A DNA stretch of 64,000 bases from Dimorphilus gyrociliatus (taxonomy: Eukaryota; Animalia; Annelida), in the NCBI GenBank assembly GCA_904063045.1, contig CAJFCJ010000013.1, positions 664,156-728,155 of the forward strand. Direction: 5' to 3'. Every line of letters starts with the position of its first letter. Positions within the stretch are counted from its first letter, which is position 1. Shown in pieces: positions 42,570-45,500 of this stretch. A program made the position numbers and the translations under genes. The notes beneath the pieces are model-generated. The model had not been told where the DNA came from, made no database searches, and saw only the letters and a program-made list of their open reading frames with translations.

Positions 42570-45500
42570 TTAGTTTGACTCCGGGGTTTCAGCTAAGGTA
42601 ACACAGTAAAATCAAAGTTAAAAAAGACATCAATCTTTACAAATATATTCAAATTCAACAAAATGGCAAAGATATTAGAAATATTCATAATTTTAAATAA
42701 ATAAGTATATACACATTCGCGTACTATATACTTATTTCCTACAATGACATATATAAATATATATATATAAGCATGTATATATATATATATATATATATAT
42801 ATATAAATATATATGTATTAGATATACAAGTATAATTATATATACATATTCGGATTATTATATATTAAAGACTATAAGTAAAGTGAATAACATTTTTTCT
42901 TAGTTACAAAAAACTCTATGCCAAAAAGAAAACATTTAAGTTCAGAAGGGCGCATTCAATATTAGTCCAATGTAAATGACCCACACAGCAATCATCCAGT
43001 AAAATTGAGTTAAAGGATTTTTACCATCTGTAAACTTCCTAGCTACAAATTTCAGCGTTTCATCCAAAATAACGACGGGCAACGAAATTTTTAATACCGC
43101 CATCCACTCTTCCAGATTTAGCGGAGTAATTTGGAAGACGGCCTAAAATTGTGGGTAAGGTATTTTCAAGAGTAAAGTGGGAAGGAAAAAACGGACAACG
43201 TTGTACTTACCGATAGAAAATCAACTTCTAAGATGAGAAAGTGTAATGACATCGAAAGAGCGATGGCACCAAGTAACCATTTATTTGACCAAGGAGGCAT
43301 AAGCGTTAGCGACTGGTTCTCGGAAATGCTGTAATCATTAGTAAGGGATGTTATAAATTTAATTTCAATTAAGCCATGTTATTACTAATTAAGTAGCAGA
43401 AACACCGTTTGGAAATAGTAATTTAAAATAATAATAATATAATAATATATAAAAGAAAGAACCAAAACAAAATTGCAAAATTGAAATTTCTAGGCATTCC
43501 TTTGGCATGCATAGTTGCGATTAGGAAAAATAAAAAGCCACTCAACCAGATGAGAAGGGCGAATTTTGCCAAAGCCCACACCTGATCGTAGAAGTCAACA
43601 GCTAACTTGCAACGAAATTATTATATAAATAATAAAAAAGATGATAAACGCTTTGTCTTAAAAAAAAATTAGGAAGTCAACAGCTTCGACGACTACTTTT
43701 CATCAGGTGTGGGATTGTGTAGAATATATTGGCAATGAAGTTAGCTGTTGACATTCCGCTACGAATTGCAGAGTGGGGGCCACAGCATAAATTGCATCCC
43801 GCTCACCTGTTCACCGCGTTCAACATTTCGATAATGACGAGAGTAGATAGGGCCATCGATGGCGGCTTGGGATTATCGAAAATGTCGCAATCGATGCCTT
43901 TAAATCTTTCGTCCTGCACTAAACATTGAGACTGGTGCGTCTAAAAAAGCCAAACACCAGCATTCAAGTAGTACAAAGCATTCAGAGAAGAAAATTAAAG
44001 GTAACAAAGAATAGACAAATTGAATCGACAAGAGAAAAAAAAGAAAAGAGTAGAGATTGAAAATTAAAAATGAAATAAAACGCGCGAATCCCACTTCCTC
44101 CAAAGCCCGACAACACAATAAAAGCAGACAAGCGATTTGTTCTTTCTTTCTCGAAAGGTTTTTTTTACCTGTTTATCGCGTTCAACATTTCAATCGTTAC
44201 TAGTACGGATAGAGCCATTGTCATTGGCTTTGGATGGTTGAAGATGCTACAATCGATACTCGGGAACATACGAGGTTCGGCCGGGCATTGCATATGATGA
44301 GTCTGAAAAAGTATTTAACAAAAAAATTTTGGGGGGAAAATTGATACTTTTGACTCCAGGCTTGCGGTAAAAATCAAATTCGTTTGATTGTTCTTCTAGA
44401 GTTCTTGTCTCGAAAAAATAAAAAAAGAGGGTAAACCGCGTCTAGGTTGCATACTAACCAATTGATAATAGTTGAGCTGAGGCCCCTTATCGTAAACAAC
44501 AAACCACCAAGCTGCGGCTCCAACTGTAGCGCATCCAACGTATCCTCCAATTGCCATATACCTGAAGAATAACCAACCGGAAATCAGTGGTTCTTGAGCA
44601 GATCTGGGAGGCTTCGTCATAATGTCTAAGTCTGGTGGGTTGAAGCCAAGTGCTGTAGCTGGTAAACCGTCAGTAACCAAGTTAACCCATAGAAGCTGAA
44701 CTGGAATCAAAGCTTCTGGCATGCCAAGAGCTGCTGTTAAGAAGATGCAAACAACCTCGCCAATGTTGGAGGAAATTAAGTATCTGATAAACTGTTTCAT
44801 GTTGTTATAAATAGCACGTCCTTCTTCGACAGCCGAAACGATAGATGTAAAGTTATCATCTGCTAAAACCATTTCTGATGCAGACTTTGCTACAGCAGTA
44901 CCAGATCCCATAGCAATACCGATTTCTGCTTTTTTGAGAGCTGGAGCATCGTTTACACCATCTCCTGTCATAGCCGAAACCTCTCCATCAGCTTGTAAAT
45001 ATTCAATAATTTTTTGTTTGTGAGCCGGCTCTACACGAGCAAATAGTCTAGCTTGTCTACAGGCCTTGGCCTGATCATCAATCGATAAGTCATCAAATTC
45101 TCTTCCTGTGAAAGCTCTGTTTTCAGTGGATTCGTTTTCTCCGAAGACACCGATACGGCGGCAAATAGCTTCAGCTGTGGCCTTGTTGTCACCTGTAATA
45201 ACGATAACGCGGATTCCAGCTCTACGGCATTGCTTGATAGCATCCATAACTTCGTAACGTGGAGGATCCAACATACCAACAACACCGACAAAGGTACAAT
45301 TTGTTTCGTATTTAATAAATTTTTTAGAATCTTCAAGATCCATATCTTCTTTCTTGACTGGTGAATCAATAGTAGCTAGGGCCAAACAACGTAAAGTATC
45401 TCTACCAGTTCCGTAATATTTAACATGCTTCATAATTTCTGCTTTGACAGCTGGTGTCATAGGCACTTTGGAAGTTCCAACGCGAACATGTGAACAACGG

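Follow-up and report, generated by a model that had tools for sequence, protein, structure and literature searches.

The 64,000-nucleotide (nt) stretch of Dimorphilus gyrociliatus DNA studied here (contig CAJFCJ010000013.1, positions 664,156 to 728,155; hereafter the window) is AT-rich (~31% GC) and gene-dense, and it carries on its minus strand a gene for a SERCA-type Ca2+ pump with two neighboring, similar exons, A and B. Coordinates refer to the whole 64,000-nt stretch. The Pfam families E1-E2_ATPase, Cation_ATPase, Hydrolase and Cation_ATPase_C match exons of the window above their curated cut-offs, the DKTGT phosphorylation motif lies in an open reading frame (ORF) at 46833-47222, and the SERCA N-terminus is at 49472 in the ORF list. 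The large exon upstream of the pair (45881-44459; the big exon in what follows) shares 74-80% identity with named animal SERCAs. An ungapped alignment places exon B on residues 871-914 of rabbit or bovine SERCA1a (E = 7e-9 over 44 residues), and exon A has its cysteines and glutamate in the same columns. Residues 871-914 form the second half of the luminal loop L7-8, with the Cys876-Cys888 pair, and helix M8, with the glutamate of Ca2+ site I. An earlier note on this DNA had proposed that both copies keep the luminal cysteine pair and the M8 glutamate, and the alignment bears this out: C876, C888 and E908 are retained in both cassettes. The closest relatives of solved structure are SERCA1 and SERCA2, with E908 and the same cysteine pair. 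From its sequence, the gene is a SERCA (P-type IIA Ca2+-ATPase), with predicted Ca2+ transport into the endoplasmic or sarcoplasmic reticulum (ER/SR).

The features around the pair are listed below in gene order. Intron identities are to L011, a 3341-nt Logan contig of a close relative that is colinear with 46054-43025 at 84% DNA identity, introns included; X1 is one of four RNA runs described further on.

44459..45881, minus strand: upstream constitutive exon, 474 codons, N and P domains to M7, ending ...NYYQL; Pfam Cation_ATPase, Hydrolase and Cation_ATPase_C
44303..44458, minus strand: intron preceding exon A, 156 nt; X1 joint 44302/44459, GT..AG ends; 71% identical to L011
44169..44302, minus strand: exon A, 134 nt; equivalent to SERCA1a residues 871-914; canonical M8
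43941..44168, minus strand: intron separating A from B, 228 nt; blocks conserved in the L011 alignment at ~44135-44085 and 44000-43941 (60 nt before B)
43807..43940, minus strand: exon B, 134 nt; equivalent to SERCA1a residues 871-914
43540..43806, minus strand: conserved intron block directly after exon B, 267 nt, ~95% identical to L011; predicted long imperfect hairpin
43329..43539, minus strand: rest of the intron after B, poorly conserved; 34-nt deletion in L011
43210..43328, minus strand: downstream constitutive exon, SISENQSL..., helix M9; its acceptor 43328 takes either A or B
43025..43141, minus strand: next exon, M10, ...KFVARKFTD; joint 43210/43141

The earlier note had described two 134-nt exons of the same phase with good splice sites. 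Both are present at these positions, and the peptides that it quoted are reproduced. Exon A is bordered by tttttcag/ACT...AACAG/gtaaaa and exon B by ttttttag/ACG...AACAG/gtgagc, in each case with AG before, GT after and a pyrimidine-rich tract upstream. The two encoded segments, read in the same phase, share 26 of 44 residues (59%), and the two DNAs share 80 of 134 bases (60%), the 54 differences being split 14/11/29 over codon positions 1, 2 and 3. Within the 64-kb window, tblastn with one cassette peptide recovers the other (E = 6e-15), and no third copy of the exon is found by tblastn. Since a search with either peptide finds the other copy and nothing else, A and B are a true two-copy duplication. 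They have the hallmarks of a cluster of mutually exclusive exons, as tandem homologs that agree in length and phase and have their own splice sites. The length of 134 nt is 3n+2, and the proposal that inclusion of both or neither would shift the frame holds in silico. With A joined to B a stop appears 8 codons into B, and with both skipped a stop follows after 15 codons. Because either arrangement breaks the frame within 8-15 codons, only mRNAs with a single one of the two exons can encode M8-M10.

The RNA evidence consists of assembled contigs from four runs of mixed samples; assembly of this kind loses rare variants and is not quantitative. A 2223-nt contig from a coral metatranscriptome (X1) joins 45884-44459, 44302-44169, 43328-43210 and 43141-43025, and contains A only. 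A 1779-nt contig from a marine metatranscriptome (X3) joins 45435-44459, 43940-43807, 43328-43210 and 43141-43025, and contains B only; its exon B matches the window at 134 of 134 bases, with 0 mismatches. The third long contig (3142 nt) is from X4, which derives from a relative (in the big exon, 86 mismatches over 1420 nt), and again contains A only. Read on the plus strand, all joints have CT..AC ends, corresponding to GT..AG for the gene. Donor 44459 of the upstream exon joins either A (at 44302) or B (at 43940). The flanking junctions 44459 and 43328 named in the earlier note are the same ones used by the RNA contigs, and the four joints that it put forward for a check in RNA are all present: 44459>44302 and 44169>43328 in X1, 44459>43940 and 43807>43328 in X3. 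Two observations would, according to that note, have spoken against the proposal, namely a lack of exon B in RNA and routine inclusion of A together with B. The contigs go the other way on both counts, with B included in X3 and no A-B joint found. Neither the joint 44169>43940 (A to B) nor the joint 44459>43328 (both skipped) occurs among the contigs of the four runs, from which rare forms could escape. At the contig level, each mature RNA thus holds exactly one of the two exons, A in X1 and X4 and B in X3.

Proteins of related species give the same picture. A search with the big exon returned cDNA-like proteins without introns, at 82-86% identity to the window, some of the B form (P0226-8, P0230 and P0347-9) and some of the A form (P0238, P0364-5 and P0367). 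Both forms are spliced exactly between ...NYYQL and SISENQSL. Between P0348 (B) and P0238 (A), 18 of the 44 cassette residues differ, compared to 15 of ~500 outside the cassette. A separate, unspliced contig in X4 covers 43459-44105, which is exon B with parts of both flanking introns, at ~1/8 of the depth seen for the spliced contig with A; a retained intron, pre-mRNA and DNA carry-over are possible sources.

Comparison with L011 indicates that neither exon is decaying. Exon A is 96% identical and has 4 synonymous and 1 non-synonymous changes; for exon B the identity is 98%, and all 3 changes are synonymous (0 non-synonymous). The neighboring constitutive exons are 91-93% identical and the introns 68-77%, with gaps; no other piece of the gene in this region is as well conserved as exon B. 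L011 also has intact splice sites for both exons. High conservation is common for regulated alternative exons. Judged by these substitutions, both exons are under purifying selection. Decay of B in close relatives, which the earlier note had named as evidence against its proposal, is thus not seen in L011, and B is also present in several phyla.

When short proteins were searched with a profile built from A and B, 74 ORFs of exon size came up in contigs from metagenomes and genomes. Many of these begin with ...Q-THH and finish with ...N-R, as expected for read-through of an acceptor and a donor, and the exon borders are therefore widely shared. Among the ORFs are two clear types, C-PAEPRMFP-x-IDC and one ending in -x-DC. 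Tandem pairs with A first are found in metagenome relatives and in three named genomes, as follows.

L001 (metagenome relative): A at 4364, B at 4574
L007 (metagenome relative): A at 9157, B at 9992
L004, L005 and L006 (metagenome relatives): A at 9992, B at 10448
Tubulanus polymorphus (nemertean, L008): A at 23350-23483, B at 24233-24366, spacer 749 nt
Echinococcus multilocularis (cestode, L009): A at 11573-11706, B at 11764-11897, spacer 57 nt
Argonauta hians (cephalopod, L010): A at 57396-57529, B at 60717-60850, spacer 3187 nt

In the window and six other loci, 14 of 14 exons compared are 134 nt long with AG/GT borders, in the order A then B. A region-restricted search also returned many cestode and trematode SERCA proteins with a B-like cassette (THQSQCLAQESRF...), and the Tubulanus polymorphus protein annotated as 'isoform X2' has the cassette THQAQCLAQEKRF...MALSTLV. 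Two flatworm predictions, P0345 and P0346 (1063 and 1067 residues), contain an A-like followed by a B-like cassette in series, for which an error of annotation is the most likely cause. The spacer between A and B implied by P0345 is only ~25 nt, next to the 57 nt of Echinococcus; with spacers this short, A-to-B splicing would hardly be feasible.

The two types can be followed across phyla. In the loop half of the cassette (residues 1-24), exon A of the window matches A of Tubulanus at 18 of 24 residues compared to 11 of 24 for its own partner B, and B of the window matches B of Echinococcus at 18 of 24. In this half, cassettes of one type resemble each other across phyla more than they resemble the partner in their own gene. 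In a maximum-likelihood tree of 39 cassettes, a branch with a support of 0.87 has all B exons on one side; on the other side are all A exons together with the single exons of a tardigrade, a rotifer, insects, a nematode and a fish. The single-exon state is seen at the DNA level in Ramazzottius (tardigrade, L015) and Adineta (bdelloid rotifer, L014). The author of the earlier note knew of no such cassette in Drosophila or vertebrate SERCAs, and this fits the sampled insect and vertebrate sequences, as do the single-exon tardigrade and bdelloid loci. The simplest reading of these sequences is that a single duplication took place before these phyla diverged, in an early lophotrochozoan ancestor. 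Both exons are thus kept by selection in L011 and have orthologs at seven other loci, including named genomes of three phyla, with the B exons forming one group. Some contigs are too short to bear on this. L002 and L003 show a B-type exon ORF only, with A and the downstream exon outside the reach of the contig, and are uninformative, and the mollusc-like L013 ends 2.7 kb after A, before any B could appear. In a representative library, the best match to the big exon is 60% identical, and clustering at 50% identity hides close relatives there.

An Rfam scan of the window for lineage-marker RNAs gave no hits. In a tree of the big exon, the window falls in a clade of metagenome and metatranscriptome sequences. 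Its nearest named relatives by this exon are a nemertean (80% identical), cephalopods (79%) and flatworms (78%). The gene in the window is without introns that its clade relatives L001, L004 and L007 keep, and intron loss has been reported for the genome of Dimorphilus gyrociliatus (PMC7854359).

In all lineages the type is defined by positions 873-874, which are H-M in A and Q/H-S/A/M in B, and by the inter-cysteine loop. There, at 879-885, A reads E-P-x-M/R-F-P-x and B reads Q-D/E-x-R-F-K/E-G. The 11-residue inter-cysteine loop is proline-rich in A (AEP..FP) and charged in B, at an equal net charge of -1; the B loop is nearer to the usual bilaterian pattern F-K/E-G-x-D-C. The M8 halves of A and B are near-identical in L001 and L007 (19 of 20 residues), Echinococcus (18 of 20) and Argonauta (17 of 20), and distinct in the clade of the window and in Tubulanus (15 of 20 in each). 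In the window the differences from A to B are M897P, T898S, V903T, T906I and I913V, and it is A that has the canonical bilaterian sequence in its M8 half. The expectation of the earlier note that one gene makes pumps with different luminal loops and different M8 packing therefore has to be divided: the part on the loops stands in all lineages, while the part on M8 is limited to the clade of the window and the nemertean.

In vertebrate SERCA2, Cys875 and Cys887 of L7-8 act as a luminal redox switch, in which oxidation lowers activity, ERdj5 and SEPN1 reduce the pair, and ERp57 also acts on it (PMC7603117). This is the same loop and the same cysteine pair that are kept in both A and B. The vertebrate loop, however, is fixed in each paralog and is regulated by partner enzymes, whereas in the gene described here the inter-cysteine loop itself is exchanged by splicing. 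By analogy with SERCA2, A and B most likely give two pumps with different luminal regulation, be it redox sensitivity or partner binding. In the lineage of the window, the M8 substitutions M897P, T898S, V903T and T906I may add an effect on Ca2+ site I or on helix packing.

The intron after exon B offers a candidate for how the choice is made. The predicted hairpin has ~59 pairs in its outer stem and a minimum free energy of -78.6 kcal/mol (z = -2.8). In this prediction its base pairs the exon-B donor CAG/GUGAG with CUCAUCUG ~255 nt downstream, 43806-43799 lying opposite ~43554-43547. The conservation with L011 stops where the predicted stem stops. The conserved intron blocks around B suggest that the choice of exon is regulated, probably through conserved intron elements, notably a predicted hairpin that could mask the exon-B donor. 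Further inverted repeats connecting the introns next to A and B are rich in AT and lack conservation in L011; they were rejected as candidates. Steric exclusion as a general mechanism is ruled out for the window by the 228-nt intron between A and B; it is possible where the spacer is very short, as in Echinococcus with 57 nt. Competing docking-selector RNA pairs of the arthropod type are not a demonstrated feature of the SERCA pair.

Taken together, the exon pair is confirmed, and we assign a probability of roughly 0.85 to the reading that A and B are spliced in a mutually exclusive manner and are an old, shared pair kept for two jobs, with a function that would lie in the luminal loop. One duplication in an early lophotrochozoan ancestor would have given the tandem exons. 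Each mRNA would take A alone or B alone, and transcripts with both or neither would be frameshifted and non-productive. The pair would have been retained for two jobs, in that exchange of the inter-cysteine loop would give different luminal regulation. In the lineage of the window the M8 change would add an effect on Ca2+ site I or on packing, and the conserved hairpin would mask the exon-B donor and so steer the choice. A bolder version holds that A and B are an inherited switch of a redox-sensitive loop, giving two pumps that respond differently to ER redox state or luminal partners, and that B in the lineage of the window is toggled by opening of the ~60-bp hairpin that hides its donor; this we regard as tentative, and less probable than not.

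Several points weigh against mutually exclusive splicing of a pair kept for two jobs. Contig data do not reach down to rare A+B or skipped forms, nor do they measure how much each exon is used or in which tissue or stage. The A-only and B-only contigs are from separate runs and slightly different strains, not from one individual; in the big exon, the X1 contig with A has 5 mismatches in 1426 nt and the X3 contig with B has 16 in 977 nt. The exon tree is based on 44 residues. The M8 differences are not common to all lineages, and the idea of redox or partner regulation is carried over from vertebrate SERCA2. The predicted hairpin is without covariation, since its stem is invariant in both species (the window and L011) and all changes are apical. 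A search for a donor-masking hairpin at exon B in other species gave unconvincing folding, with the partners near the end of the folded stretch.

Could exon B be a relic duplicate that is spliced in occasionally as noise, the working pump always being made with A? Two of the three runs with long contigs assembled only the A form, and the canonical bilaterian M8 half lies in A. This reading is nevertheless largely refuted, and we give it very little credence. The identity of B to L011, without a single non-synonymous change, is above that of the constitutive exons; B is the assembled major form in X3 and the form of six related cDNA-like proteins, as well as that in the reference proteins of many flatworms; and it retains the cysteine pair and E908. 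Just as improbable is an origin of the A and B transcripts from two separate paralogs, from haplotypes or from a duplication in the assembly, rather than from alternative splicing. The two exons lie 228 nt apart in one gene, between shared flanking exons, and at 60% identity they are far from allelic. The perfect match of the X3 contig to exon B is to that of this very locus, at exactly its junction coordinates, and the tandem layout is repeated at seven other loci, three named genome assemblies among them. Two genes would agree with the separate samples and slightly different sequences of the A-only and B-only contigs, and the genome search covered this 64-kb window only.

A third view accepts that the exons are truly mutually exclusive and takes the pumps to be biochemically equivalent, so that the pair would be kept solely by divided expression between cells or stages. 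The equal net charge of the loops and the identical Ca2+ ligand and cysteines are in line with this, as are the M8 halves, which are almost the same in several lineages. We consider it unlikely, if less so than the two readings above. The loop residues specific to each type (A-E-P..F-P in A; Q-D/E-x-R-F-K/E-G in B) are kept across several phyla, over a very long time, while the rest of the loop varies. Because these type-specific residues persist, distinct protein-level constraints are favored over a purely regulatory partitioning.

The literature describes splicing of invertebrate SERCAs as C-terminal only, both in an evolutionary review (PMC3527596) and in a bivalve paper (PMC6987452), and in the full-text literature searched we found no description of an internal SERCA cassette. 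C-terminal splicing, as in vertebrate SERCA2a/2b and in Artemia, C. elegans and pearl oyster, is alike in that one gene gives several pumps, and the gene in the window also has it. It swaps the tail after M10, however, whereas the A/B cassette swaps part of the internal core, the L7-8 loop and M8 with its Ca2+ ligand, by means of duplicated exons. Clusters of mutually exclusive exons are known from muscle myosin heavy chain (PMC3912159) and from coq-2 in helminths, annelids and molluscs (PMC7434440). Like the SERCA pair, these are tandem homologous exons of equal length and phase, one per mRNA, that are old, are found across phyla and swap a segment of an enzyme. They differ in the gene and the segment, and in the SERCA pair exclusivity is secured by the 3n+2 frameshift. 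Database annotation already models the alternative, as 'isoform X2' of Tubulanus, and within the literature searched the pair is undescribed. The pair adds a new case to a known mode of splicing, in a pump that has been studied very thoroughly.

The gene shows further signs of alternative splicing outside the cassette. A C-terminal choice of the SERCA2a/2b kind is visible in RNA contigs that splice 43025 to an exon starting at 41888 (loose end located to 41859-41888), which gives a short tail (...FTD-AGIAEDPMKEK). Read-through of the 43025 donor would give a 27-residue hydrophobic tail similar to the one in Tubulanus isoform X2. Just after the phosphorylation-site exon lies another pair of alternative exons, at 46248-46339 and 46571-46663 on the minus strand. 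The RNA contigs show the joints 45881>46248 and 46339>46842 (X1, X2 and X3) as well as 45881>46571 and 46663>46840 (X1 and X4). All cDNA-like relatives examined have the 46248-type exon only. No coupling of A or B with this pair or with the tail is visible: the cDNA-like relatives all combine the 46248-type exon and the short tail with either A or B. In L004, M7 is encoded by a small exon of its own that is duplicated in tandem (8791-8874 and 9297-9380), and the same is seen in L005 and L006; Adineta steineri (L014) has a similar second M7-like piece (2206-2289 and 2334-2369). Possibly these M7 exons form yet another alternative pair, one that the window lacks: there, M7 is fused into the big exon.

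Few membrane pumps have been studied as thoroughly as SERCA, and its diversification in invertebrates is usually ascribed to the C-terminus. The A/B pair represents a second, internal route of SERCA diversification, kept in the clade of the window and in nemerteans, flatworms and cephalopods. It also supplies two naturally occurring pumps whose differences lie almost entirely in the inter-cysteine loop, which makes the long-standing question of what L7-8 contributes to regulation directly testable. For annotation, the pair means that P0345 and P0346 wrongly hold both exons and that most flatworm reference proteins list one form. Work on drugs against parasitic flatworms includes SERCA among its targets, and for this it is useful to know that these animals have two SERCA isoforms.

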